Made by a program: the position numbers and the translations under genes
Notes under the pieces: model-generated
Databases searched by the model: none
Told to the model about the DNA's origin: nothing
Seen by the model: only the letters and a program-made list of their open reading frames with translations
DNA from: Eukaryota sp. TZLM1-RC
Taxonomy: Eukaryota; Protista; Metamonada: BaSk clade
NCBI GenBank assembly: GCA_040285825.1
Contig: JAUPSS010000002.1
Coordinates: 372,001-436,000, forward strand
Direction of reading: 5' to 3'
Length of the DNA: 64,000 nucleotides
In this document: positions 10,724 through 64,000 of the stretch, in pieces
Layout: every line of letters starts with the position of its first letter
Numbering within the stretch: the stretch's first letter is position 1

Positions 10724-11467
10724 ATGAATGTTCGGTCCTTTTCCTCTGATAGGTCATCAGCGGGAACACCCTCTCTTAGGCGTATTTATGAATCTAAGTT
10801 CTCTGCTCTCAATAAACCGCTTCAGGCCGAGCGACAACAAATACAACACTATCTTCACACATTGAACCGTGATTGTAATGGGTCCCGATTGCGTACTCCT
10901 TCTCCTGCTTGTCCCTCACGACCTCATACTTCTTTTTCTTCCTCTCCCAGTCGTCGTTGTAGTGCACATAGTCCTTATACAGCTCCTCTCAAAGTAAATC
11001 CCAAAACTTTTGCTGCTGAAATAAGCACAATGGCGAGTACAACCAACAATATCAGGCAAAAAAGCAGGCAACAAGTCAAGCGTATAAAACAGCAAGAAGA
11101 TACAAAGCTCAAACGACTTTTGTATTCTTCTAGCTTGCACGTGTCTTATTTTGCACGTGATTTGGTCCAAAATCAATCATCATCAAAGAAGGTCAAAGGG
11201 GATAACAATGCGAATGAAGATCATGTGATGAGGGATGATGTCATCATTATGAGAAAGAGGAAACTTCTACAAATGAAGGGTTCCAAACCTCCTATGGCGT
11301 CACAACACGGCACATCAACTTCCAAATCAAAAAATCGATCATCAGTTGATGACAGTGCAGTTCATCCACAACGATTTTCTCTTCCCCCAATGAGCAGAGC
11401 TGGGAGATGTGTCTCAGCACCATTGTACAGGGGGTCTGAGTTATCAAGGGAGTTTGTTAAAAGGTGA
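10724..11467 (+). CDS. Hypothetical basic Ser/Arg-rich protein (247 aa)
   Basis: Uninterrupted ORF with host-like composition; no recognisable domain; may extend 5'. Confidence 0.6.
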   Translation: MNVRSFSSDRSSAGTPSLRRIYESKFSALNKPLQAERQQIQHYLHTLNRDCNGSRLRTPSPACPSRPHTSFSSSPSRRCSAHSPYTAPLKVNPKTFAAEISTMASTTNNIRQKSRQQVKRIKQQEDTKLKRLLYSSSLHVSYFARDLVQNQSSSKKVKGDNNANEDHVMRDDVIIMRKRKLLQMKGSKPPMASQHGTSTSKSKNRSSVDDSAVHPQRFSLPPMSRAGRCVSAPLYRGSELSREFVKR

Positions 11468-11593: not shown

Positions 11594-12658
11594 TTACAAG
11601 TTGTCTAAAAGCTTTACAACATCCAATCTATCAACATTTTCAAACAAATCTAACTCAAAATCACACAAGGAGTCTAGGAACAATTTAAATTTGGATGAAA
11701 AAGGAACTTCTTTTCCAGCAGGGACAACAGAAAGTTCAACTGTTCTAGAAGAAACATTAGGCACACGTGATACTTTCCTATTCCAGCCAGCACCTTCCAC
11801 ATTAGGAAAGACCCTGACTTTCATTTCAGTCAATAAATCTGGAGGAACCGTTTTTCCGGAGTAATCACTGCTGACACTACCTAGCGACCCTGTAGAGTCT
11901 GACCTATTCCGTGTCCTGGGAGAAGAGAGAGGCATTGAACGGGATGGAGTAAGGGAATGTCTGCGAGGAGGGATAGAGGTGTCAAGCGTTGTTGGGCTGA
12001 GATAGTTGTCAAGAACTGGTGTGGGAAGAGAGACAAGAGCGGGAGGAAGAGGGTCTGAGAAGCTTATGGTGAGGGAGAGGCAACCGCATAGGGTAATGAC
12101 GGAAGTGACCTGAGAGCGAGGGGAATAGAAAGAGAGTGTTGAGGAAGAGGAGAAGGAGTGAACATCGGGGAGTTTGGTGGGGTAGTTTGAAGAAACGTGC
12201 AGCTGGCGGAAAGAATGTTCAGAGAGAGAAGACACTGGCAGAGTGTTGAAGATGATAGGTAGTGAGCGGAGAAGGGTAGTGAGTTTGGAGAGAGAGTGAA
12301 TGTACGAGGTACGGTTCTCTTTGTTGACATTGGCATCAGAGAAAACAAGCGAGGATGGAGAAAAGGAAAAGGTAAACATGGTGACTGGTGTGAGTTTGGA
12401 TGCATTTGGGGTGCATAAAGAATAAAGAACGTGCCAATCTTGTGTTAAAGTTCCGGGGACACTGATTGATTGTTGAGAAGATTGATGTTGATGAACATCT
12501 TCGGAAAAAGAAGTGTGCAGCTCACTGAGAGATGATTCAAGAGAGAATGAAGTAGATGAATGCAGAGAAGCTGGTACTAACAGCAGTTCAGATGCATGTG
12601 AGAGAAAGTCTGCAATGGCCACAAGAGTGCTTTTGAAGGGGTTGTGTATCACAGGCAT
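11594..12658 (-). CDS. Hypothetical Ser-rich protein (354 aa)
   Basis: Long uninterrupted ORF, convergent with the previous gene. Confidence 0.7.
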   Translation of the reverse strand: MPVIHNPFKSTLVAIADFLSHASELLLVPASLHSSTSFSLESSLSELHTSFSEDVHQHQSSQQSISVPGTLTQDWHVLYSLCTPNASKLTPVTMFTFSFSPSSLVFSDANVNKENRTSYIHSLSKLTTLLRSLPIIFNTLPVSSLSEHSFRQLHVSSNYPTKLPDVHSFSSSSTLSFYSPRSQVTSVITLCGCLSLTISFSDPLPPALVSLPTPVLDNYLSPTTLDTSIPPRRHSLTPSRSMPLSSPRTRNRSDSTGSLGSVSSDYSGKTVPPDLLTEMKVRVFPNVEGAGWNRKVSRVPNVSSRTVELSVVPAGKEVPFSSKFKLFLDSLCDFELDLFENVDRLDVVKLLDNL

Positions 12659-12701: not shown

Positions 12702-13392
12702 CTACTGTGAAATTCTATCAAAACGCACTTCTGGCTTTTGACATTGAGGGCAAACAAACTTATCATGGTTCACCCTCCCATCATCGTGATACACCTTTTG
12801 ATTGAATACCTTACAGCAATTCGTTTTGGCAGATGTGTAGAATTCATCTCCATTAGGCTTCACATATGTAAAATGTTTCAAAATCTCCTTCAAAAAGCGC
12901 TTCCTTGGGGTTTTCACAGCTTGTCTTGATGGCCCATCACCTCCACTGCCAAACCAAATTATGGTTTCTCTTCCATTAGCCATTAGTTTAATTTTTTCAA
13001 TTAATCCCATTATCCTTTTGCCTTCTTATTAAGAAATCAAACTTGTTGCGGCGCAGGGCTCGGCGATCTCCATTCCTCAGCAGTTTGTCTAGTATAGTTC
13101 TCGGACGGAAGTCGGGATTGCTGATTTCTTCCTGTGTCGGTACCCACATCAAAGGCGTTGCTATTTCATACAAATATTCCCGGAAATTCTGTACGAAATA
13201 GCAATTTGGTGATGCATGGGTCATGACAGGCGGTTGAATAATATTCTTTGCCTTTGGATTTAAAACAAGGCCCGAAAGTTGATGGTTCACATTATTATCA
13301 TCCATTCTTGATCCAATTGAATACCCACACAAATTGTTGTGGTTAAGATCAATTGCACAAAATGAATATTCAATTGGATCAACTGGAGGATG
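12702..13392 (-). mobile_element. Fanzor family B, truncated and internally deleted copy with intact right end
   Basis: RuvC-I FCAIDLNHN, IIWFGSGG, GDEFYTSAKTNCC and CPQCQ; near-identical to 25320-27010; deletion joins CPQCQ to the terminal hairpin; ends agaatttcacagtag. Confidence 0.85.
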
Positions 13393-13537
13393 CTTGGAAT
13401 TCACCTTTCCGTTTCCTGGTAGTGCGAGGACCAAGGGTACTCCAATATGATTGGTATGCCTCAGTGCTTTTGACGTCAGCAACTGGGACAGACGATGTCT
13501 CGCCGTCATACCAAACTGCGGTGCAATAAGGAACTTT

Positions 13538-23840: not shown

Positions 23841-25696
23841 GACTTATTTCTATTTACATTAATGCATTGAATCACAATATTATTTTTGAGTAGCTTAATT
23901 GTTGTAATACCAATAAAATAAATTTAATTTATAGCATTTGGAAAATGAGATCCAAAAAGGTAAAAACAAATCTTGAAAACAAAATGACACTACTGGGAAA
24001 ACAACATTTAAATAAATGAGGAATGTGACAATCTGATCTTTTGTTAATGAGAGGTTGTTGCAAAGTTGTTGCAATGGGTCTTCTTAAAGGATTACCCTTC
24101 TCAGGAATTAATGAAAATGATTTAGAAAGATTTTTCTCAAAGAAATTAATAAACACTTTTCAAATAAAAAGTCCGTGATTAATACTTGGCTTCACCAGAA
24201 AAACCTTAAAAATAGATTTATCACATAAATAAATTTTTTTGGAAAGCGGACTTCGTCATTGCTGTCACTACGAAGGTGGGGAAAGATTCACCTTCATTAA
24301 ATTGTTGTTTACCACTTTTGTGGCATTGGGGTTCTGTAAATTTACAAGAGAATTGACAAGTCTGGTAGTTCTAGAGACAATGCCGTTATTACCCGTTGAT
24401 AACTCAGCTTGCTTCACTTTTTTTACGGAAATGATGTCTGAAAGTACTAGCTTGTTCCCTCGGGACAATCAAACTAAGAAAAATAGTGAGAACAACTACC
24501 CATGGAGAAATAGAAAAATCTATCTATTGTTCAGAATTAAAATCAACAAGTTCAGACGATGGAATGTTTCTCATCAACAGTAGACGAATAACTAAACCAC
24601 AAACAATAGCTGCAGTCACACCCAAGAAGTACAGTAACTGCATCTTGTTTTGTCAGGGGAAGTTGAGTGGCGACGAAGTGTAATGATAAGCAAAATTGGC
24701 GACAACAACAATTAGACCATTTTGCATTCGATTAACAACGATTTTCTGCCTTGATGTAATGACGATTCATCTAACTTTAGCACCCAATACTGAGAAAATC
24801 GAATATTACCTGCAAGTAGGTGACCTTGCTAGGATCCAAGACCTTTTGAAAGAAACGGACCTTCAACTGAACACTGCAACAATGACCTTTTTCTTCTCCG
24901 CCGGCCTCCGTATTTTGTCCTTTTTCGAGAATATGGCGGGTGAAACAATGGAAAAACATGCTCTGGCTCCCTCCGCAAGTTAATTTCCTGGCTTTATATC
25001 ATTCAGCCAGCAATTGGAAATACACTTTTTACGATTGAACCCAGACCAACAACTTCGGGGGAACCCATTCAAACATTCAATAAAAGGACTTTTCCACATA
25101 AACCCTTGCATCGGATGGTTTATCAGTCAAGGTAATCTAAAAAGACAACCCCCAAGAAAACCAAAAATCTTCACACAACCAGAAAAATCGCAACCGCCAG
25201 AACCAGTGGAGAACACGATATGCCTACCAAGAGTCCAAAGCGAAAGTCTAGACTTCAATGACAAATTCATCCTAGGCAACATTGGAGAACTGATGACCCT
25301 ATTAGCCTTCTGCCGTTGATGTAATTGAATACTCATTTTGTGCAATTGATCCTAACCACAATCAAAATCGTGTGGTTATTCAATTGAAACAAGAATAGAA
25401 TAACAAGAATGTTGACCATCAACTTTCGGAGCTTGTTCTAAATGCAAAGGCAAAGAAAAATATTCACCCACCCGTCTTGACCCACGCATCACCAAACTGC
25501 TATTTCGTACAGAATTTCCATGCATATCTGTATAGAATAGCAACGCTAATAGCATGGGTACCAACACATGAAGAAATCAAGAATCCCGACTTCCGTCCGA
25601 GAACTATACTGAACCAACTGCTGATAAATGGAAACCACCGAGCCCTGCGACGCAACAAGTTTGATTTTTTTATGAGAAGGCAAAAAACGAATAATG

Positions 25697-26628
25697 AGAA
25701 TTATCTTCATCTTACTGTTGTGAAATTACAGAAGTCTGTTTCAAATGGTTTTGAAGACCTGGATTTTTCTAACGACTTAGTGTGACTACAATAAATAATC
25801 CCGTCTTTGCTGCCTTTTTGTCAGACATCCAAAATTGCACTAGTTTAAGTTCTCAGCAACCAAGTCCATTTGGTGTTCACTTAGCAAATGAAGCTTGGAA
25901 ACAAAACAAGCGTTTGAGATTAGGGTTGTATCCAAGCGGACTTTTGGATAATTCTACTTGTATTTGCAATGAAAAACTGTAAGCCAATTTTCGTCATATT
26001 GAGAGTTGTAAGAAGTTTCTTCAATATTGGTCAGTTCTTCATAATGCTGTTCGTGATGTGACCTTCGAAATGTTCAAGTGTTACAATTTCAATTGCAAAG
26101 TAGAACCCTTGTTGAAGCATTATAGCGATAATAATTTGTTTGATTCTCGTCGTGGTGATTTAATTGCTCCTTTTGTGGATTCCTCTCAGGTTGTTGTTGA
26201 TTTTTTTACTGTTGATCCCTTTGCTTCAATTTATCGTGATGATGTCTTTGTTAGTTTTAGTGGCCACTTGGACAAGGCTGAGGTTTGTAAACGAGACAAA
26301 ATGATGAGTTATTGAATGATTTAAATCAGAACTTTTACTTAAAGTTTTTTTTGTTCCTATTGCCTCCTCGATTTTTGGTAGTCTGGCAGTCTGGTTTGAA
26401 TTTTCTCCATAATTTTGATATTCTTTGTCGTTTAAATGGTAAGAATTTTGCTGGGTATTTATGGAAGAATTGTGTCATTTTTGCTTTGTGTAGAAATGTT
26501 CCCAAGTATTTAAATTTAATGATGTCTAAGCTTTACAAGGATTCTTCAAGAGTTGATGTGGAGAATTTTGTTTCTTATGTGTTTTAGTTTGTTTTGTTTT
26601 GTAATTACGTAGTAAATAAAATTATCGA
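25697..26628 (+). mobile_element. Degenerate non-LTR retrotransposon 3' part (family D) inserted in the Fanzor ORF
   Basis: CIC..HI..C, HNAVRD, VEPLL, RRGDL..VDF RLE motifs; splits RRQK..|MGLIEK, which is contiguous near 13000; AATG duplicated at both junctions. Confidence 0.8.
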
Positions 26629-27010
26629 AATGGGATTAATTGAAAAAATTAAACCAATGGCTAATGGAAGAGAAACCATAATTTGGTTTGGCAGTGGAGG
26701 TAATGGGCCCTCAAGACAAGCTGTGAAAACCCCAAGGAAACGCTTTTTGAAGGAGATTCAGAAACATTTTACATATGTGATTCCTAATGGAGATGAACTC
26801 TACACATCTGCCAAAACGAATTGCTGTAAGGTATTCAATCAAAAGGTGTATCACGATGATGGGAGGGTGACCAATGATAAGTTTGTTTGCCCTCAATGTC
26901 AGACACTCTGGTCGAGGGACATCTCAGCCTCCAGAAACCAGCTAGAGATGGCCATAAGTGAGCACTACTACAATGACAGACCCGAGGCGTTCCGGAGACC
27001 CAATAGATAA

Positions 27011-27179
27011 ATGTTTTTTTATGTATTGCGTACCTGGATGCGTATTATGATGTTGCTGCTTTAACTATCATTTGATCGTGATATCATATTGTGATGGATC
27101 TAAAGTATGCTTAACGTCTATCAAGATTGCATGAATTGGTCAAAAGCCAGAAATGTGTTTTGACAGAATTTCTCAGTAG
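27011..27179 (+). ncRNA. Putative Fanzor family B omega-RNA scaffold
   Basis: Lies between the Fanzor stop and the right end; terminal hairpin GTCAAAA/TTTTGAC conserved in the 12702 copy. Confidence 0.6.
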
Positions 27180-27182
27180 TCG

Positions 27183-28895
27183 ATGACGTCGCCCAGTTCG
27201 TTTAACACTGCTAGCCTGGCTAAGCAGTTTGTTCCAATGTTTGTGACTTCTGATGCTGACACTGATTCTTCTGAGTGTGAGTCAGATACTCCCAGCCTGG
27301 CACCTTCTCTTGGAAGTCTCAACGATTACACTCATATCCTTTCTGGGAGTCGTAGCAACACAGACCCTACCGTCAATTTCAATCCTCGTCAGCCCAGTTC
27401 TGTCACATCAAAATTACAACAATTTACTGTCCGTCGTTCCAATTCCGAGTCCTCCATAGATCCGATTGGTGTCCTTCACCAACCATTCACCAACCCATCT
27501 CCCCCAAGCTCAGTGCCTATTGAACCAAAACCCGTAATTCCAACGTCGTTCAACTCTCTTCCTGCATCCCCTATCCTCTCAGCTTCTTGCTCGCCTATTC
27601 TTCCAGTCAATGACAAACCACAGCCCCATGCATCCCGCACTCTTTTTGTGAGCGGTCCCTTTGCCTCTCTTTCTGCAGCTACCATTCGTGAGATATTCTC
27701 TGACTTTGGTGATATAATGACCTTTCACATTGACTGCAAGGATCGAGGTTTTGTCTTGGTAACTTATTTTGATCTAAATCAAGCCAGGGTAGCTCAAAAG
27801 TCCCTAAATGGAACAAGATTGCCATTGACTGAAGACTCTAGTCAATTGAGCGATGAACCTTTAATTGCCAAGTTTTCTGTCCCTGCGGAGGGAGAATCTT
27901 CTAATCACCATGGAACTTTGGTTGTTTTTAACTTAACATCTACTGTATTGGACTCTGAATTAATGTCAGTGTTTGGAGCTTTTGGTCCTATTAAAGAAAT
28001 TAGACAAACACCTCACAAAAATCACCATCGATTTATTGAATTTTTCGACATTAGACATGCAAAAAGAGCTCAACAAACCCTCAATAAATCTGAAATATTT
28101 GGTAGAAGGGTTAAGATTGAAGCTTCAAAGCCAGGAAGTCGACGTTACCAACAGCAACAAATTCTTTTGGAATCACAACTTAAACCTTTCTGCCAGGGTT
28201 GTTCTCATTATCTAAAAGGAAATTGTCTGTGTCGCAATTTTTCCTCAACTGTACCTGCAAAATCAAGTTTGTTATCCACAGTAGGAGGTGATTCTGTTAG
28301 TGATTTGGACTCTTCATTAGGTCAGAATGATGACATGATGTTCAAAAGAAAACCTATGACTTTTCGCCGAAATTCTGATAGGTCAAATACAGATATTATA
28401 TTTGATCTTAATTTGGACAAAATCAAATCTGGTGAAGAAGTTCGTTGTACTTTGATGATAAAAAACATTCCAAACAAGTACCAAACTTCAATGTTACTTT
28501 CAGCAATTAATCAAAACCATGCTGGAAGTTTTAACTTTTTCTATTTGCCAATTGACTTTAAGAACCTTTGTAATTATGGCTATGCGTTTATAAATTTCAG
28601 GAATCCAAAATTTATCATCCCTTTTTACGAAGAATTCAATGGTAGACGATGGGAGCATTTTAATTCAACCAAACTTTGTGAACTCAAGTTTGCCCGTCTT
28701 CAGGGTCTTTCGGCTTTGTTTACACATTTCAAGAATTCTTCTCTACTCTCGGAGGGAAATAAGTATAGACCGTTGGTGATTCATTACCCAAATGACGAGG
28801 ATATGTCTTTTCCTGTTGAAGTTCCTCTTTCACCATCTATTAATTCTCTGGAAGATATTGAAAAAATTGCAGCCAGCCGCCGTTTTTGTCAATAA
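27183..28895 (+). CDS. mei2: Mei2-like RNA-binding protein (RRM1, RRM2, C-terminal RRM3)
   Basis: SRTLFV..RGFVLVTYFD; GTLVVFNL..EIRQTPHKNHHRFIEFFDIR; CTLMIKNIPNKY..FFYLPIDFKNLCNYGYAFINF..ARLQG. Confidence 0.95.
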   Translation: MTSPSSFNTASLAKQFVPMFVTSDADTDSSECESDTPSLAPSLGSLNDYTHILSGSRSNTDPTVNFNPRQPSSVTSKLQQFTVRRSNSESSIDPIGVLHQPFTNPSPPSSVPIEPKPVIPTSFNSLPASPILSASCSPILPVNDKPQPHASRTLFVSGPFASLSAATIREIFSDFGDIMTFHIDCKDRGFVLVTYFDLNQARVAQKSLNGTRLPLTEDSSQLSDEPLIAKFSVPAEGESSNHHGTLVVFNLTSTVLDSELMSVFGAFGPIKEIRQTPHKNHHRFIEFFDIRHAKRAQQTLNKSEIFGRRVKIEASKPGSRRYQQQQILLESQLKPFCQGCSHYLKGNCLCRNFSSTVPAKSSLLSTVGGDSVSDLDSSLGQNDDMMFKRKPMTFRRNSDRSNTDIIFDLNLDKIKSGEEVRCTLMIKNIPNKYQTSMLLSAINQNHAGSFNFFYLPIDFKNLCNYGYAFINFRNPKFIIPFYEEFNGRRWEHFNSTKLCELKFARLQGLSALFTHFKNSSLLSEGNKYRPLVIHYPNDEDMSFPVEVPLSPSINSLEDIEKIAASRRFCQ

Positions 28896-28970
28896 TTGTT
28901 GTTTTTAATTTATTTTGCTAGTTTTTTGATGTATAAATATGATTCTTTATTAAATTCATTATATTCAAAA

Positions 28971-30479
28971 CTATGGCATAATTCTGCCAACTAATCTAGG
29001 ATATAAAGTCACATCTCTGATATGATGAACACCTAATATCCAGCAAATAAATCTCTCCAAGCCAAGACCCCAACCTCCATGAGGAACGGAACCAAATCTG
29101 CGTTGATCAATATACCAGTAATATGACTCTTCCGATAGTCCTTCATTCTTGAAGTTTTCTACCAATAGATCAAGGTCATATACTCTCATTGAACCACCAA
29201 CAATCTCTCCAACAGTTGGGACTAAAAGATCCACAGATTCAGTTACAAGGTGGTCTCCTTCCTTCACTCTTTGCATGTAGAAAGGTTTTTGAGAAGAAGG
29301 AAAATGTGTTAAAAAAATAAACTCGCCAATGGTATCGACCATTTTTCTTTCGGGCAGTTCCGGAATATCATCACCCCACTCATAAAAAGTCTTGGCTTCC
29401 TCATCTTTATAAATTTCGTGCTCTTTCAACCATTCAATCGCCTCAGAGTATCTCATCCTCCTAAAACCTTTTCTTGGACGGACAAAATCAGGATTCATTT
29501 CCAAAATTTCAGCAGCACATCGAGGGTCACTCATGGTCCTATCCACGGTGGAAACGACCATATCTTCAATAGTGTTGAGCAAGTCATCAAATGATATAAA
29601 AGGACACTCACCTTCAACATGAGCGAATTCAGACAAATGCCTTCTTGTTCTTGAAAGCTCAGCTCTATAAGAAGGCATTATACAAAAAACATCCCCCAAA
29701 GAAGGAAGTAGCGACTCAAGGTAAAGTTGAGAAGATTGGGTGAGATAGGCTTCTTCACCATAGTAGTCGAGCTTAAATAGAGTTGAACCACCTTCTACCT
29801 GACCCTTAACCAGTGTGGGGGGCATGACTTCATGAAATCCCTTGTCAAAGAAATGTTCTCGCAAATGGTGGGTAATAAATGATCGTAGTCTAATGATACG
29901 GGAAGCGTTGGTTCCACGAAGGGTTAAATGTCTATTGGTGAGCAGTTGGTCGACAGATGAGTCAGGGGTAATGATGGAATCAAAAGAAGAATCGGCTATT
30001 GAAATAATGCTGTAATAATCAACTTGGAGCTCGACACCGTTGGGTGCTCTGGGATCGCGGGCAAGTTTTCCATACAGAGTGATAGAGGACTCATTTGTGA
30101 GACCCTTAAAGTAAGCATACTTGGCTAGCGGACCGTTGAGTACACATTGGAGGAATCCCGTGCCATCACGTAGGATGATGAACATGAGAGACTTTCCCTC
30201 AGCACGGAGACGATGGACCCAACCGTTGATGATTAGGCGATCATCTGTAATGGTACATTCTTCGGATGTAGGTAGAACTTTGGAGATTTTTGTTTTACGT
30301 GCTTCTGCAAGACTTGGATCGGGTTGAGGAGCAGGAACATCAACAGCTTTCTGAGCTTGATCTTGAGCTTGCTTGTTGGCTTGTTTAGCAGCAGCCTTGG
30401 CAGCCTTTTTAGCTTCGATCATGGCTTGCTTCGCAAGTTTCTTTTGAGCAGACTTTGAAAGCTCTTGAGGTTCAGACAT
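28971..30479 (-). CDS. NARS1: Asparagine--tRNA ligase, cytosolic type
   Basis: GWVHRLR..LRDGTGFLQCVL, QVEGGSTLFKLDYYGEEAYLTQSSQLYLE, YRAE.SRTRRHLSE, PHGGWGLGLERF, LYPR. Confidence 0.97.
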   Translation of the reverse strand: MSEPQELSKSAQKKLAKQAMIEAKKAAKAAAKQANKQAQDQAQKAVDVPAPQPDPSLAEARKTKISKVLPTSEECTITDDRLIINGWVHRLRAEGKSLMFIILRDGTGFLQCVLNGPLAKYAYFKGLTNESSITLYGKLARDPRAPNGVELQVDYYSIISIADSSFDSIITPDSSVDQLLTNRHLTLRGTNASRIIRLRSFITHHLREHFFDKGFHEVMPPTLVKGQVEGGSTLFKLDYYGEEAYLTQSSQLYLESLLPSLGDVFCIMPSYRAELSRTRRHLSEFAHVEGECPFISFDDLLNTIEDMVVSTVDRTMSDPRCAAEILEMNPDFVRPRKGFRRMRYSEAIEWLKEHEIYKDEEAKTFYEWGDDIPELPERKMVDTIGEFIFLTHFPSSQKPFYMQRVKEGDHLVTESVDLLVPTVGEIVGGSMRVYDLDLLVENFKNEGLSEESYYWYIDQRRFGSVPHGGWGLGLERFICWILGVHHIRDVTLYPRLVGRIMP

Positions 30480-30668
30480 CGATTAATATCAAAAAGGGAT
30501 GATAGGATGTTGTGAAATGGACTCTTATTGGGAGAATCTAATTTTATTTGATTTTATTTGAAAAAATAATGTAGTCCTGGAACAGACACATTTTAAAACT
30601 CAACCAAAAACCCTAACTGAAACTTTTACCTACTCAAAGGCCATTAATTGAATGACAAGAGATTTTCG

Positions 30669-44637: not shown

Positions 44638-44679
44638 CGGTTGAGATTAAAAACTTTTCAAAACTTGAAGCCTTTCAAA

Positions 44680-44995
44680 GACTTATTTTCAAATTCATTC
44701 ATCCATTTTGTGCCAAACCTCTCTGTGGCCATGAATCTTCTTAGTTTCATGACTCTCAATTCTTTATTAAAGTAAAAAGCTCCAACATAGAGAGAAGAGT
44801 TGCTTTTTGCCTTGCAGTATTATAGGAATTCTTCATGATCTAGAGTTTTCTTTGAAGATTGTATTAGTTGTTCCTACTCCTTTACAGTTTTGTTTTTAAT
44901 AATCCACGTTTTTTTAGCATTTTTATGGAATTATGCATTTTGATGGTCTTTGCTCAGAGTTTCTCTTCTTCTTTGAGGGGCAATAAGCCTAAAAG
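44680..44995 (-). pseudogene. Fanzor family D fragment (canonical Fanzor1-type central region)
   Basis: One frame with three stops: FRLIAPQRRRETLSK...SSKKTLDHEEFL*YCKAK...FYFNKELRVMKLRRFMATERFGTKWMNEF, resembling the Fanzor1 segment between RuvC-I and RuvC-II. Confidence 0.65.
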
Positions 44996-45905: not shown

Positions 45906-48491
45906 CTAAAATTTCAACCATTTTACATCAGAATTTGAACAAATAATCAAGTAACCATTAATAGTCTCCAGCAGATGCTTATTGGCAACAAGTGACATTT
46001 CAATAGCATATTTACCAGGATCTAAATCAAAATAAATAACTTGCTTTCCGCGATTTTCAATCAAATCAGATTCACTGGCCAGAGTTTGAATAGTAATTTT
46101 AAACTCAATATTGTCTGTACAATAAAAGCAGCCCTGGCTATGAGACAAACAGTCGATCTCTGTGATTAAGGTGGAACTTTTTGAAAAATTAAAATGCCTG
46201 CAAAAATAAACATCATAAAAATGAATTCGTTCAATTTCAATTTCAAAATTATCTTCAGAAAAAATTAATAAATTACCATTCAAATTGAATGGAACACTTG
46301 AAACTTGAACAGACATATTACTTTGAGATGGGATTGTTAAAATTTTATCGGCATCAAGAAAGTGTTTGTTACAACAACTCAAATGATCAATGCCGCCATG
46401 GTTAGTAAAAGGGGTGCTAGTCTTCACCAACAACTTTGAATTTGCAAAATTTTTAAGCTGGAATCTGGGATAAAAAAGACGCCAAATTAATTCCAAATTA
46501 ATAAAGTCGAAAAAATGAAATGAGGAAAGGTCAATCAAGGGCAATTCAAAGTTACCATTGAAGTACACGGAACTAATAGGTTCGGGGTTAAAGTGAAACA
46601 AATTTTCCTGAGAATAACAGAATTTTAAAGAAAAATTAACATTGCACTTAAATAAACTTGAAACAGAAATGATGGTTTTACCTGGTTTAATTAAAAGAAA
46701 AGTAATCAAATTTGATTGAATGAGCTCATCATAAGGGTCACAATACACCAAACTTTCCAGAATTGAATACTTTTCACCCAGACAAGTTGCGGAAACTTTG
46801 ATCGGATCATAAAAAAGTTTTCCCTTTTCATCAAGAAAGCCTGAAATATTTACCACACAAACAACATACTCACTAGATTCAACCAAGAATACAGCATCAG
46901 GAATTAAATCAAAACCAGAGCAATCCAAATCAAATTCAAAATATTTAGATTTAGATTCAGTATTAAAATGAAGTAGAGAAAAAAGATCAACATCGTCTTT
47001 TTTTAATTTCCTTTCCAATAAATCACGAGGGTGGGTTCTATAATTGGAATAAAGGGTGATGTCATCACCATCAATCAACACGTCATAAACACGTGATCTA
47101 TCAACAGCAACTGTTTTAAAATCAATCCAATCAAATGATTGAAGTATATTGACCTTTTCTATGTCATTGACACGTTGCATGACGTGACCAGTTACCGTGA
47201 ACATCAGAGCTTCTACTGTGAACTGCTTCAATACTCCAAAATTCCCATACAACGAAGCAATTCCCTTTTCAATAAGAGCACAACATAGAACTGGTGAACC
47301 TTCATCGGTATAAGCAATAGAAAGAGCGGGGTGGTTGGTGGATGTGACCGGAAGCACGTTATCAATCAAAAAAGATTGGCGACTTCCAAGAGAGTCAAAT
47401 AAAACAAGATTGGATGACTGAGAGCAATAGTCTTGGAAAATCAAGCAATCAATCATTAATTTTGAGCTAACCACGTATCCAATGACAGAAACGGCTTGAC
47501 TACTAGAAAGTCTTCCCTGTTCTATCAAATATGACCTTCTCGACGTATCACTGAGTAACTGACAAGCCAAATGGGCTCTACTCTTACTGTGAACTTCTGC
47601 TACAGTTGGTAATCCTAAATTAACTGATTGATTAGAACTCAATTCTTTGTGAACAGACCTAGTTGATCGATGCACGGGTGATCTAGAAATTCTGGGGGAA
47701 GCTGAAACTGGTCTAGAAGGAGAGGAAATAGGGTCAGGGTTGGGGTCAGGGTTGGGGTTTGATTCAACCAAAGCGCATTTCAACTCCACTGCCTCGCCTA
47801 CAATAACCGTTGCATCTTCACTTCTTTTGTATCTCATTCTGTTGCAGACACTGGGATTCTTAGTCAATGGATTAACCAACAGATGCTGATTTGAAAACAC
47901 CTCTTCAAGTTTGGCCAGAAAGAATGAGCAAACAAGAGAGAATCCTGCAGTAGAAGACTCAGAGTCCCTGGCAAAGGTTCGAAATAAATCCAGTATTCGA
48001 TCACCATTCAGCAATAGATTTTGAGACAGTAGGGGAGGGGGGTCAGAAAAAGGACGGAAGCAAGTGACGAGGGTAGAGAGACGTTGATAAAGAGAAAGAA
48101 GGAAAGGGTGGGGCAGGGTTGAGGTTGTTAGTTTGTACAAAAGGGAGACAATTAGTTGCCGATCATGATTCCATGATGGGGTGATGAATGATGGTTTAAT
48201 TGAGCAAAGGAGGATTACTATTGCCGAAGCATGGGATAAGTCACAATCAGTGTTGAGTAGTGAAAACCAGTGTTTGGAAAAGTTTTGGAACTGAGGACGA
48301 AAACATGCAGGAAGTAGACTCTTCTGTAGCTTTAATACAAGGTGTGGAACATCAGGAATAGAAGAGAGGGAAGACAGCCAGACTGATTCATATGAAGTCC
48401 AGGCAGCCACAAAAGAACTTGAGGGAAGGGACCTATGACAATGTAGTAACAGCTCTGTGTTGATCATTCTACGAAATAAGTGCCCCTGCAT
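45906..48491 (-). CDS. Hypothetical protein (861 aa)
   Basis: Long uninterrupted ORF; no domain recognised. Confidence 0.8.
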   Translation of the reverse strand: MQGHLFRRMINTELLLHCHRSLPSSSFVAAWTSYESVWLSSLSSIPDVPHLVLKLQKSLLPACFRPQFQNFSKHWFSLLNTDCDLSHASAIVILLCSIKPSFITPSWNHDRQLIVSLLYKLTTSTLPHPFLLSLYQRLSTLVTCFRPFSDPPPLLSQNLLLNGDRILDLFRTFARDSESSTAGFSLVCSFFLAKLEEVFSNQHLLVNPLTKNPSVCNRMRYKRSEDATVIVGEAVELKCALVESNPNPDPNPDPISSPSRPVSASPRISRSPVHRSTRSVHKELSSNQSVNLGLPTVAEVHSKSRAHLACQLLSDTSRRSYLIEQGRLSSSQAVSVIGYVVSSKLMIDCLIFQDYCSQSSNLVLFDSLGSRQSFLIDNVLPVTSTNHPALSIAYTDEGSPVLCCALIEKGIASLYGNFGVLKQFTVEALMFTVTGHVMQRVNDIEKVNILQSFDWIDFKTVAVDRSRVYDVLIDGDDITLYSNYRTHPRDLLERKLKKDDVDLFSLLHFNTESKSKYFEFDLDCSGFDLIPDAVFLVESSEYVVCVVNISGFLDEKGKLFYDPIKVSATCLGEKYSILESLVYCDPYDELIQSNLITFLLIKPGKTIISVSSLFKCNVNFSLKFCYSQENLFHFNPEPISSVYFNGNFELPLIDLSSFHFFDFINLELIWRLFYPRFQLKNFANSKLLVKTSTPFTNHGGIDHLSCCNKHFLDADKILTIPSQSNMSVQVSSVPFNLNGNLLIFSEDNFEIEIERIHFYDVYFCRHFNFSKSSTLITEIDCLSHSQGCFYCTDNIEFKITIQTLASESDLIENRGKQVIYFDLDPGKYAIEMSLVANKHLLETINGYLIICSNSDVKWLKF

Positions 48492-51893: not shown

Positions 51894-52188
51894 ACACTTG
51901 CTCAAAACTCTGGTCTTGATGCTGAAGAGACTATTATCAACTTGCAAGAAGAAGCCGAAGAGGGTGGCATTGTTGGTTTAGATGTCTTTTCTGGAGAAGC
52001 CTGTGATCCAAAAGAACTTGGAATTTGGGACAACTATTGTGTTTTAAGAAATATGATTCGTTCATCTGCTGTTATTTCTTCTCAATTATTGTTGTGTGAT
52101 GAAATTATAGCTGCTGGTTTGTTACCTTATGATCATTCTGTTAACTTTAGGAAGAAGCTTGTCAATGAAAGCTCAACAACAAGGATAG
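51894..52188 (+). pseudogene. CCT6: 3' fragment of chaperonin CCT6 (zeta) with a 34-nt intron (52117-52150)
   Basis: TLAQNSGLD..VGLD..GE..DP..GIWDNYCV..QLLL.DEI..AG; removing GT..TAG gives GRSLSMKAQQQG*; the 5' part of the gene is absent. Confidence 0.8.
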
Positions 52189-52446
52189 TTGGATTTGTAT
52201 TGCATAGAAATAAATATGGCTTAATTATTTGATTTTAATGTTTTAGCATTGACATGCTGTCACAACAGTGTAAATATGTGAATCTTTTGTTGGCTGTTTT
52301 AATGTTTTTCTCATTAATAGAGGATTTATAATTGCTGTTCATAAAAGGATGGTTGTGTGTTCATCAAAACAACTGAAGCTTCATGATAACATACATACAG
52401 AAATCTTTTCACTGTTTCGCAGAACTCAATAATTGTTAACAAACTT

Positions 52447-53604: not shown

Positions 53605-53611
53605 CAAACTT

Positions 53612-53706
53612 CAATCATTATTGATAGTATCATTTCTGTGGAATTATCCCGGATACATCACAATTGAAGCAAGTAGCTAATCAATAATAACATGAAATCT
53701 CAGTAG
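53612..53706 (+). other. Probable solo Fanzor right-end/omega-RNA remnant
   Basis: Stem TTATTGAT/ATCAATAA followed by tgaaatctcagtag, matching the family A/B right-end motif. Confidence 0.45.
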
Positions 53707-54302: not shown

Positions 54303-54509
54303 GAGTTACATAGAGTTGAAATTCCAGAAACTTTTACAAAGGATACCTAGTTTATGAACCTAGTTGATGAAGTGAGGGGAAAGTGTGGGAATAGTGAAAA
54401 CCTCCCAAAACCAAGTTGAGGGTTAAAAACCTCCCAGAACAGGCAACCAGAAGTCGAAAATGGGGTGACAAGTGTAAAATTTGATAGATGAGCTCTTTAT
54501 TCTCACTAC

Positions 54510-56465
54510 ATAACAGACACCCACTCTGTGTCACGTGTATTCACTCGGTCTTGTGCACTTAACTCGCTGCTGACCCTTGCAGCGGTGCAACAAATTCGGA
54601 CTGACCTTCCTGTGGTCACCGAGATTTGTCATGAAGCTTCTTTATTACTTCAATCTTTTCTTCTGAATTTTCCGTTGGCATCTAGAGCTTTAGTGGAACA
54701 GGATGTATGGTATCTGTTTATGACCGTCATCACCACTGGTTCTTTTCCTAAGCCTTCCACATCTAAAGGCCAACGCCAATTACTCCATATCTTTTACAAT
54801 GGATTTCTTCCTGAATGCCCACAAGACAGGTCTCTTGTTTCTGTGTGGGAAAATTCTTTAGTGCCTTACAGAAATTCATTAAATCTTTTTCTCAATGCTT
54901 GGCTGCAATCTCAGAATTGTAATTTTATCAATAGAAAAGAGCTTTCTCCTTACCTTGCTTGTCGGGCTCGTCAATTGGCCTCCAACGTTAAGACAAGTCT
55001 ACCTAAAATTTGTCAATCCTGGACAAAAAACTTTATTCGTGCTCATTGTAGAGCCCTGAATAAAACAAATGTCTTTGCAAATAATATTCTTTCACTTTTG
55101 CCAGATGAACCACTAGCCCAACCCGAGGAAGTAGTAGTTCATTCTGTTCTTGAATACCTCATCAATTTCAATTTGAATAATTCAAGAGAAAGATTCTTTT
55201 TATTAAATGCATGTAAGTTTATCTTGAATCTCCTTCAAAGATTTCCTACCACTGCCTCCCTACTGTCCTCACATGATAAAATCACTTTTTCATCAAAGGA
55301 AATTGGTGAGCTATTTCTCTTCAATCTTAAAATTTCACAATACTTACTCACTTTCTTTTCTCATATGCATTGCTGGAAGAAATTTAGAATAATACCTTTA
55401 GCTTCTCATAAAGGTTCTAAATTTATTGAGGTACCTTCACAAATTTTCCACTCTGTGAAAAAATTTCCAATTATTGAAGGATCATCTTCCAAAACAAAGT
55501 TTATCAAAAATACATGTCTGAAACGAATATTCAAACAATGTCCTTACCAAAAATTCAATATCAACAGAAAAAGTTTGAAAAATAGATTTAACAAAATTTT
55601 ATTGAAAACTAATGGTAATGAACTGCTTTTGACCTTTGAAGGTAAAAATAATGACTCAGAAAACACAGATGAGCTGGATGACCCACCGAAAAAGAAAAGA
55701 AGATCAAAAAATGAAATGAAAAGTGACCCTAATGCCAACAAAACCAGAGAAACACAGTTGAAGGGTACTAAAAAAATGCCCCGTCGAAGACGTAGACATC
55801 CAGTCGAAATTTTACCTGAAAGGCCCCTTATTGGTGTTGATCTTGGCCAATCAAGATTATGTGGTTACTTCTTAAATGATAATCAATGTGGAGTTATCCC
55901 TTGTCCAACTGGCAGAAGATACATGACAAAACCTTCACCCAGTAAACACTCTCCCAACCAATATTCCGTTCAAAATTTCAACCAATATTTGAACCATTGG
56001 AATTTGGTCAGGAGGAAAGTGTATTTGGAAAATAATCGCCAGAAATGGAAAATAATTAAATTTGATAACCGCAGACGAAAAGAGAGACGGTTCAGAGAGA
56101 GTCTCAACAAATTTCAAAGGCTGGCTGGACATCCTGAAAAACTCTATCTTGCTGTGGGTTCTGCTAATTTCCCTTCTCATTGCCGAAAAGTCAATCGATA
56201 TGGATCAGCAAGGGCTTTCAGAAAATGGTTGTGTTATCAAAAGGACGTGAAGCACTTGTCAACCAGTGAATTTAATACAAGCAAAATGTCAAGTTGTTGC
56301 ATGGCCGAGAATATTCAAGCAGGCTCATGGCAGATGCGTATTTGTACTGAGTGTCAAATAGTATATGACAGAGATATTTCCGCTGCAAAAAATATTCAAA
56401 TTAAGAAGAAAGCGGAATTGTGGCCGGAAAGATACATTTGCCCAGATGCTCTGTTGAGAAGATGA
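54510..56465 (+). CDS. Fanzor RNA-guided RuvC endonuclease (eukaryotic TnpB homologue); start codon reads ATA in this copy
   Basis: RuvC-I LIGVDLG, LAVGS plus rearranged RuvC-II SEFNTSKMSSCC, Zn finger CTEC, RuvC-III YDRDISAAKNI; NLS-like PKKKRR and PRRRRR; the sister copy has ATG at 37625. Confidence 0.92.
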   Translation: MTDTHSVSRVFTRSCALNSLLTLAAVQQIRTDLPVVTEICHEASLLLQSFLLNFPLASRALVEQDVWYLFMTVITTGSFPKPSTSKGQRQLLHIFYNGFLPECPQDRSLVSVWENSLVPYRNSLNLFLNAWLQSQNCNFINRKELSPYLACRARQLASNVKTSLPKICQSWTKNFIRAHCRALNKTNVFANNILSLLPDEPLAQPEEVVVHSVLEYLINFNLNNSRERFFLLNACKFILNLLQRFPTTASLLSSHDKITFSSKEIGELFLFNLKISQYLLTFFSHMHCWKKFRIIPLASHKGSKFIEVPSQIFHSVKKFPIIEGSSSKTKFIKNTCLKRIFKQCPYQKFNINRKSLKNRFNKILLKTNGNELLLTFEGKNNDSENTDELDDPPKKKRRSKNEMKSDPNANKTRETQLKGTKKMPRRRRRHPVEILPERPLIGVDLGQSRLCGYFLNDNQCGVIPCPTGRRYMTKPSPSKHSPNQYSVQNFNQYLNHWNLVRRKVYLENNRQKWKIIKFDNRRRKERRFRESLNKFQRLAGHPEKLYLAVGSANFPSHCRKVNRYGSARAFRKWLCYQKDVKHLSTSEFNTSKMSSCCMAENIQAGSWQMRICTECQIVYDRDISAAKNIQIKKKAELWPERYICPDALLRR

Positions 56466-56741
56466 ATGGGGAACCTGAGCATCCAGAAACAAAAACTTTT
56501 GAGACCGATCTACAAATGCCTAAGTAGCATTTGATAGATTCACTTAGATACATCAAGTCGCGAGGCTTTGTTCTGTGAAAGCAGTAGGTGTATTTAAGTG
56601 AGGTAGCCCATTGATGAAGATCATGATTGTCTTTGTCAAATGATGCTACATGTCTCTTACAGCCTGTGAGTAGACACTGAGGGAGTTGAAAACAGGAGTG
56701 AATTTCACAGGGGAATGCATGATAAGTGAAATTCACAGTAG
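56466..56741 (+). ncRNA. Putative omega-RNA scaffold of Fanzor A (guide would start at 56742)
   Basis: Conserved between copies; several hairpins; terminal stem GTGAATTTCAC/GTGAAATTCAC followed by AGTAG. Confidence 0.75.
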
Positions 56742-62497: not shown

Positions 62498-64000
62498 CTA
62501 TCAATATTGTACAAAGAATTTCACACAGTGTGAATATATTATTGAATTTGCACACTTAATTACATTAACTCAATACTAATGGGACGACTATCATTGAACC
62601 GAGATTTCCTCTACAAAATCTTGATCTGCTTGCTGTCTAGCTAAAGCTTCTCTTATTCGATTGAAAAACTGCGGTGTGAATATTGAATAAATATCCCTAA
62701 GAATTGTGTAAACTTCTCACCACCAAGGGTTAGTATACACTGAACACCTTGGAAATACGTTGATCAAAACAGCTACTGCTGTCTTCTTAGACGTCTCACA
62801 CGCCTTGGCCTTCTGAATGGTTCTGGCCTAGTACCAGTGAAGTACTCACTAATTGCAATCTCCAGCTGGTTTCTGGAGGCTGAGATGTCCCTAGACCAGT
62901 TGGTCTGATATCGAGGGCAATCGAACTTAGCGTTATTTACCCTTCCGTCATCATGATAGATCTTTCTATGAAAGACCTTACAGCAATTCACTTTTGCTGA
63001 GGTCATAAACTCGTCCCCCACTTTGACGCTTTCAAAGTGTTTTTTGATTTGGTTGAGAAATCTTTTTCGGGGGGGGGGTATTTCACAGATTGACGAGAGG
63101 GACCACCACCGCCATTGCCGAACCAAACTATAGTGTTTCTTCCTTCAGACAAGCGTTTAATTTTGTTAATAAAACTAGTTAGTCTCTTTTGTTTTCGTAT
63201 GAAGAAATCAAACTTATTTCTTCTCAGCTTTTTTCTTGCACCACGCTGCACATTTCCAGACATAATTGAAGCATATTCAGGCTCTTCCTCAGATTCAGGA
63301 ACATAAGGTAAACTTATTTCAATCAGATACTTTTGGAAGCTCTGAGCGGAATACGTGTTAGGAGTTGCTTGAGTGAGAGAAGGCTGGTGATTTAGTCTTC
63401 GTTCTTTTGGATTCAGTAGCAGTCCAGAACGTTCAAAAACAGGTGCAGAATTTCGGAAAGAACCAGTAGTCCAACCACAAAGATTGCTGTGGTTGGGATC
63501 AATGGCTACAAAAAACAAATTTTCATCAGGATCTCTGTAATTGGGCTGTTGTTCCACTGGTAACCGCGCTCTTCTCTGTGGATTTGCTCTTCTATGGACA
63601 TTAGATTTTCGTTTCCTTTCAGAGTTATGAAAATCATAATTTCCAGAGACTCGCCTGGGCTCAAATTCCGCTCTATTTGGCCTATTATAAGTTTTTCTTT
63701 CCTTCTGGGTAAACGTAAACCGCAAGGAATCACCATTCGAAAAAATGGTATAGTTAATAAATTTCGATTTATTAAAAAACCGATAAGGGTTGTTCAGAAG
63801 CTCTTTGTTTGCATTTAGTTTTGTGAAATAAGCTTCTGCTTCTTTAGTCAAGCTGCAGAAGCATGAAGACCAACTGGACAGTGGAAGGAGAGTGCCTTTT
63901 CATCACATCAGGGCAGTTATCTTCTAAAAAAGATAAAATGTGCAAGCCAGATTGAACGATTGTTGCAGCAGACTCCATATTGATGGGAAACCGTTCGTTT
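62498..64000 (-). mobile_element. Fanzor family C (frameshifted; runs off the window end) with 3' putative omega-RNA region
   Basis: FVAIDPNHSN, IVWFGNGG, GDEFMTSAKVNCC, WSRDISASRN; frameshifts at the G-run 63069-63078 and near 63885; ORF ends at 62773. Confidence 0.88.
62538..62673 (-). mobile_element. ~135-bp 3' stub of non-LTR family C inserted in the Fanzor C 3' region
   Basis: Encodes NRIREALARQQADQDFVEEISVQ*; TSD GTGTGAATAT at 62528-62537 and 62674-62683. Confidence 0.88.

Follow-up and report, generated by a model that had tools for sequence, protein, structure and literature searches.

TnpB and Fanzor nucleases generally take their guide from the 3' flank of the element, and cutting of the empty site is their known role (PMC13565253; PMC10530073). 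The Fanzor elements analysed here come from Skoliomonas litria, a soda-lake flagellate and free-living metamonad. They resemble the Fanzor1 of non-autonomous elements such as that of SfAV (Yoon et al., 10.1101/2023.08.09.552727), by a protein of 600-650 aa with a D-P-x RuvC-I motif, a glutamate six residues before the zinc finger and an RD RuvC-III motif. As in Fanzor1, the element is devoid of transposase and a structured (here predicted) non-coding 3' region closes at the right end (10.1101/2023.08.09.552727). In the S. litria elements, unlike Fanzor1, no clear TIRs or TSD are seen with the two left ends located, AGTAG/TAG recurs as a direct repeat at the two junctions, the right ends are ragged and the copies cluster before host start codons. 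With IS607/Fanzor2 and IStrons (10.1101/2023.11.20.567912) they share a short core repeated at both junctions, a similar TAM (putative here) and right-end motif, a 3'-flank guide and tolerated insertion into genes. They differ from these by a larger protein, by the absence of a group I intron and by the absence of a serine recombinase (TnpA) among the called genes and ORFs beside 16 copies; tolerance would be achieved via the promoter and not via splicing. Short direct terminal repeats, a right-end hairpin, the lack of a fixed TSD and a host-gene fragment captured at one left end (locus L012) recall Replitrons, Helitrons and Cryptons (PMC10288648; PMC13565253). In contrast to these groups, no HUH or tyrosine recombinase partner was identified for the S. 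litria elements. Promoter-seeking elements such as Tf1, the P element and Mutator, as well as bacterial IS that carry outward promoters, likewise gather upstream of genes and can supply a promoter. The S. litria element differs from all of them in having an RNA-guided nuclease, the guide of which is the leader and start codon of the gene. Finally, a guide complementary to the 5' region of a gene is also found in TldR repressors (10.1101/2023.11.30.569447), which are nuclease-dead, domesticated and conserved, whereas catalytic residues are kept in the S. litria family, the copy studied is decaying and its guide is merely its flank.

The window analysed is a stretch of 64,000 nucleotides of contig JAUPSS010000002.1 (GCA_040285825.1), whose proteins are labelled Eukaryota sp. 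TZLM1-RC, i.e. S. litria. Tightly packed host genes alternate in it with nests of LINEs, LTR elements and Fanzors. The S. litria genome paper contains one mention of transposons and nothing further on such elements (10.1101/2023.05.03.539051). No description of Fanzor clustering before host start codons was found in our literature searches, and the tendency of Fanzor right ends to settle at gene starts across the genome is apparently undescribed. We focused on the Fanzor copy B1, on the second copy B2, which borders the same nest of TEs (14.5 kb) on its opposite side, and on the Mei2-like gene that B1 adjoins (Table 1). Spliced or frameshifted Fanzor models were compared piecewise, without a joined or repaired protein.

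Table 1. Features of the B1-Mei2 junction and of copy B2 (window positions)
Feature	Positions	Strand	Basis
Fanzor B1, N-terminal/RuvC-I part, 5'-truncated, with frameshifts and stops; RuvC-I AIDPN	24813..25687	+	tblastn to P0162/P0167/P0212
Degenerate RLE-type non-LTR retrotransposon fragment, 941 nt, within the Fanzor ORF	25688..26628	+	frames, alignment with uninterrupted copies
B1 C-terminal part: RuvC-II E (DELYTS), CC..CPQC zinc finger, RuvC-III RD; stop 27008-27010	26629..27010	+	
Right end of ~170 nt, conserved and non-coding; candidate scaffold of the omega-RNA, with three stems predicted	27008..27179	+	alignment, fold
Upstream ORF of 8 codons (MCFDRISQ*), sharing the Mei2 frame; its stop is the TAG at the element end	27153..27179	+	
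Terminal motif GAATTTCTCAGTAG; family consensus GAAATTCACAGTAG	27166..27179	+	copy alignments, end-pattern search
3' flank, predicted guide: TCG + first 17 nt of the Mei2 CDS	27180..27199	+	
Intact Mei2-like gene, 570 aa, RRM_1 x2 + RRM_2	27183..28895	+	domain search, ortholog alignment
Fanzor B2; a deletion within the element brings the zinc finger next to the last 41 nt	12702..13394	-	

The junction reads as an earlier note on this DNA had described it: the family-B right end (…CTCAGTAG) closes at 27179 and bases 27166-27185 are GAATTTCTCAGTAG TCG ATG, the ATG being that of an intact, co-oriented Mei2-like ORF. The encoded protein has two N-terminal RRMs and a C-terminal RRM_2 (PF04059), and its best distant matches are plant MEI2-like proteins. 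As its N-terminus aligns with the orthologues of Skoliomonas RCL and GEMRC, the ATG at 27183 is the native start and the gene was not decapitated. In RCL, Mei2 shares a 48-nt bidirectional spacer with INCENP; no Fanzor end of any modelled family was detected at the Mei2 loci of these two sister species. Upstream of GEMRC Mei2, a hairpin similar to the B end was rejected: its z was -0.1, and searches by blastn, tblastn and nhmmer linked it to none of the modelled families.

That note had also relied on B2 to support the boundary. B2 (12742-12702, minus strand) does have its last 41 nt in common with B1 at 90 % and diverges from it after CAGTAG; however, seven further copies stop 1, 1, 3, 4, 4, 6 and 6 nt short of this full end. 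The full CAGTAG is thus kept in two of the nine subfamily copies, B1 and B2, and GTAG is whole in two of nine, while the core present in all copies ends AAATTCA/CACA, i.e. at 27173-27175 in B1. Counted from the fullest end, the distance to the Mei2 ATG is 3 nt; counted from the core that no copy has lost, it is 7-9 nt. The B1 boundary is uncertain by up to 6 nt, an uncertainty that bears on the last 4-6 nt of the element and hence on the first guide bases. A 23-nt end pattern matched the B1 and B2 places only (0 matches in 100 shuffles). The terminal motif was also found in family A (CACAGTAG in three of four copies) and in a GEMRC element (CACAGTAC); because it is common to them, it is probably encoded by the element, the CAGTAG-type motif probably being the full end and the shorter copies trimmed. 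CAGTAG is unlikely to be a host promoter or target motif: no such motif is evident ahead of 41 host ATGs, and different families and species share it. The terminal core could be partly target-derived.

Comparison of the nine subfamily copies showed that ~170 nt after the stop codon are common whereas the flanks are unrelated. The two family-B left ends located (L010:8922; L012:20659, minus) read AGTAG followed by CGAAAGCGAAAG and repeat the right-end terminus: their AGTAG before CGAAAG, set against GAAATTCACAGTAG at the right end, forms a direct 5-nt repeat. Family members have the catalytic layout AIDPN / DEFYTSAKTNCC / CPQC..RDIS (DELYTS..NCC in B1), i.e. a RuvC triad whose RuvC-II Glu has shifted to six residues before the zinc finger, the Fanzor arrangement. 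The TnpB-type C-terminal TNB domain was recovered on this eukaryotic contig by PF07282 above cut-off and by an Atlas score of 0.98 to TNB clusters, and the nearest Atlas clusters were giant-virus TNB proteins of 620-800 aa. Rfam, PDB sequence and NCBIfam searches returned no match above threshold. For the predicted omega-RNA, the consensus fold comprised 55 pairs with no compensatory change, the B1 z was about -2 and Rfam gave no match.

B1 lacks ~160 N-terminal residues, its longest open stretch is 140 aa and it holds no intact nuclease ORF; judged from these frames, it is dead and cannot make the nuclease. Its C-terminal part matches PF07282 (E 6.8e-6) and is 88-92 % identical to P0155/P0160/P0161. 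When 24700-30500 (5,801 letters) was compared with public contigs (three sets, one sample, presumed DNA), uninterrupted B copies were confirmed, a Logan contig directly joining 25687 to 26629. Among the contigs listed for this segment in that one sample, none spans 27179, and depth is zero over 27222-27415. Identity of B1 to the consensus is 60-84 % in the 5' half, 90-97 % in the 3' half and 90-93 % in the right-end region, a pattern which identifies it as a mosaic. Likewise, family-B copies (window 24813-27175, B2 and one at L005) are 90-99 % alike in their 3' halves vs 60-91 % in their 5' halves, which suggests recombination or conversion among 3' ends. Private substitutions in B1 amount to 3.2 %, the second highest value among nine copies, and we found no sign that sequence was preserved in its right end beside Mei2.

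Near-intact relatives exist elsewhere, namely a B3-type copy and a B copy that is open over 527 aa and carries a single homopolymer frameshift. Two B3-type Fanzors (window 63863-63884, minus, and L012 ~10771-10792) share a 22-nt GT..AG segment at the point of frame shift; this may be a genuine, very short intron, in which case the nuclease of the L012 copy would be intact. On a contig other than that of the window, L012:9349-9601, immediately before the left end of a B3-type Fanzor that is near-intact, is a 99.5-100 % copy, with 107 nt missing, of the 5' coding part of an 861-aa gene (window 48093-48307 and 48415-48453); it represents a recent capture of host sequence at a left end. At window 62539-62675, a LINE 3' end lies inside a B3 omega-RNA region with a short duplication (ATATTCACAC), after which the B3 element resumes and ends ~20 nt before a Ca-channel ATG. 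An isolated C-terminal fragment in a TE nest (51942-52232) is CCT/TCP-1 chaperonin-like by eye. In Skoliomonas sp. RCL, the P0175 cluster groups 41 near-identical B-like Fanzors, several of them full length (596 aa), and is a young family suited to defining ends and TAM.

The distances between right ends and gene starts were considered on 16 right ends of families A, B, B3 and candidate C, leaving out a candidate 'family D' end before NFRKB and a degenerate L012 copy. Thirteen of the 16 lie before a co-oriented called ATG, host ATGs apart from that of Mei2 being automatic gene calls, at 3, 7, 20, 21, 22, 24, 29, 42, 43, 51, 58, 63 and 95 nt (median 29). The genes behind them are unrelated (EPL1, Nup96, DHHC, DnaJ, Ca channel, amino-acid transporter, AAA ATPase). 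Eight of the nine B-subfamily copies end before a called host ATG, at 3, 21, 22, 29, 43 (B2, ATG at 12658), 51, 58 and 63 nt; as the distance is not fixed, base-precise docking of family B at the start codon was rejected. Right ends are closer to ATGs than 10 LINE or other TE ends (median 29 vs 110 nt, Mann-Whitney p=6e-4), the LINE distances being hand-read and liable to conceal unmodelled Fanzor ends. ATG-adjoining ends are 13/16 for right ends vs 1-2/6 for left ends (p=0.01-0.05). Spacers expanded beyond 500 nt are 16/18 of divergent vs 6/14 of convergent ones (p=0.008), a tally biased by the choice of loci via Fanzor proteins and based on small samples. Fanzor right ends just before gene starts are thus a real, genome-wide habit. 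In the simplest reading, the right end is tolerated where it replaces a promoter, or is aimed there, the figures fitting a preference of insertion and a selective survival of copies alike.

Other ends deserve mention. At L010:2862(-), L010:13395(-) and L012:7378(+), CTGTAAGA immediately precedes the ATG of three genes unrelated to one another, two of them with TTATCTGTAAGA; these ends probably belong to another, precisely docked element family. A candidate right end of another family (GAAATCTCAGTAG, window 53605-53706) faces a stop codon 129 nt away and is a counter-example to the ATG rule. On the minus strand, 44638-44990 holds a decayed RuvC-II-like frame, a candidate Fanzor, whose end AATCTCA lies 4 nt before an NFRKB-like ATG. 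The family-A copy at 54345-56741 (open 645-aa ORF; family cluster of 82 members) occupies a bidirectional spacer, its left end ~50 nt from one ATG and its right end 95 nt from the other.

The native promoter of Mei2 has most likely been displaced, as the earlier note had proposed, since 3 nt of host DNA remain vs 48-137 nt (~100 nt) in TE-free head-to-head spacers of three Skoliomonas genomes. AT content is 0.64-0.67 in the right end and 0.69 in the native spacer. It had further been suggested that Mei2 transcription may start inside the omega-RNA region, and this appears acceptable for the last ~30 nt of the element only. Nine upstream ATGs are present at 27011-27153 in the B1 end, the last at 27153, and with leaders from 27060-27115 the Mei2 AUG is almost fully paired in the fold model; a productive start deep in the omega-RNA is for these reasons improbable. 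In Giardia, transcripts begin within degenerate AT-rich patches lying 3-25 nt ahead of the ATG, and translation requires short leaders (PMC1885649). Applying the rules of this related metamonad, we place the Mei2 start most likely within 27154-27182, i.e. the final stem arm and the AATTTCTCA motif. The still open Mei2 frame is weak evidence of expression, with a 20 % chance of remaining so anyway after 3 % neutral change.

Taken together, these data lead us to favour, as fairly probable, the view that B1 is a dead Fanzor1-like copy in the promoter spacer of Mei2 and one case of the genome-wide habit, with Mei2 probably starting in the element end and no device controlling Mei2. B1 belongs, as a dead copy, to a Fanzor1-like family of S. 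litria elements devoid of transposase, whose copies occupy short spacers upstream of genes with the right end outermost, beside the start codon. It would have entered the ~50-140-nt Mei2 promoter spacer; later insertions would have piled into and behind it to form the present nest, and the native promoter would have been cut off. As its frame was kept, Mei2 would probably be transcribed from a loosely defined AT-rich initiator within the interval given above, yielding a short leader without upstream AUGs. Under this explanation, and with the same degree of confidence, the 3-nt gap would be the near tail of a broad distribution and would reflect neither start-codon docking nor Mei2 control. If insertion into TE-free divergent spacers were uniform, one or more of 13 ends would fall at ≤3 nt with P≈0.42. 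In a head-to-head spacer, a right end comes to lie before an ATG whichever way the element is oriented; hence no special cause has to be invoked at Mei2, be it for the 3 nt or for the co-orientation. The single distance is not beyond chance; right ends as a group do lie closer to ATGs than LINE ends.

The same figures leave some room for geometry and selection alone, in which insertion occurs anywhere, copies survive only in the ~100-nt non-coding spacers, the right end does not act as a promoter and Mei2 either starts from an AT-rich patch present by chance or is expressed at a low level. Distances are only marginally shorter than uniform (P(mean ≤ observed)=0.03-0.08), ~9/13 ends lie in head-to-head spacers, right ends in tandem spacers face an ATG three times and a stop twice, and the right end is not AT-richer than the native spacer. 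This account is nevertheless unlikely in our opinion, given the far greater distance of LINE ends, the adjacency usual for right ends and seldom seen for left ends, and the loss by B2 of all but its last 41 nt beside its gene. Another proposal explains the ragged ends by self-cutting: with AGTAG at both family-B junctions, the filled site would resemble TAM plus target, a nuclease acting in trans would cut it, and repair would trim TAG and flank towards the ATG until stopped by selection or motif loss, B1 and B2 keeping TAG owing to damaged scaffolds. At L010 and L012, AGTAG does stand before the common left end; an intact TAG is present in 2/11 B-type ends vs 3/4 family-A ends, whose left flank CCTAG is unlike the right end (p=0.08), and IS607 TnpB escapes self-cleavage by a TAM/right-end difference (10.1101/2023.11.20.567912). 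Against it, only two left ends are available, the TAM is putative, and ragged ends may equally arise from imprecise integration or a partly target-derived core; we hold this proposal to be improbable.

Regulation, the last possibility, had been raised by the earlier note, as had homing onto empty alleles. In this reading, the right end would make an omega-RNA with the Mei2 guide, and a Fanzor made elsewhere would use it to bind or cut the Mei2 start, thereby controlling a gene related to meiosis, or, during sex, to home onto alleles that are empty. The predicted guide indeed equals Mei2 5' sequence and covers the ATG, as claimed, but this is automatic, since every TnpB/Fanzor guide is its 3' flank. 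It has no other match at ≤2 mismatches over 14 nt in the ~200 kb examined; partial matches inside family-A ORFs (3 mismatches in 14) were treated as chance. Near-intact nucleases do exist elsewhere, in the B and B3-type copies named above, and nuclease-dead TnpB repressors are known in bacteria (10.1101/2023.11.30.569447). However, the same layout occurs at many unrelated genes, the orthologous loci are without detectable element, the scaffold is decaying in one of the most decayed copies and not conserved, and the catalytic D/E/D residues are kept, unlike in TldR. Mei2-like proteins are moreover widespread in plants, and a meiotic role of the present one is hypothetical. For regulation after the manner of TldR, scaffold and target should both be conserved and the protein should not cut; as none of this was seen, a Mei2- or meiosis-specific role of the junction is not supported, and we consider it very improbable. 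Homing onto an empty Mei2 allele would be a generic Fanzor expectation only.

Returning to the favoured view of B1 as one case of a general habit, it could be extended, tentatively and with more doubt than belief, to the Fanzor right end as a portable core promoter. The element would colonise gene starts, and its last ~30 nt would replace the native promoter and keep the host gene on, while the leader and start codon of the gene, taken as guide, would provide a conserved, hard-to-escape homing target. If true, the element would achieve by a promoter what IStrons achieve by self-splicing, and Mei2 would be the gene to which a family-B copy has docked most closely. The Mei2 locus yields a sharp prediction, a transcription start in 27154-27182, and does not alone indicate control of meiosis; as the genome authors sequenced S. 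litria RNA, start-site mapping is within reach. Fanzor insertion sites and their tolerance by the host are poorly known. A family that settles at gene starts and may replace promoters would account for the spread of an RNA-guided nuclease element through a genome dense in genes, and many host promoters would then be Fanzor-derived.
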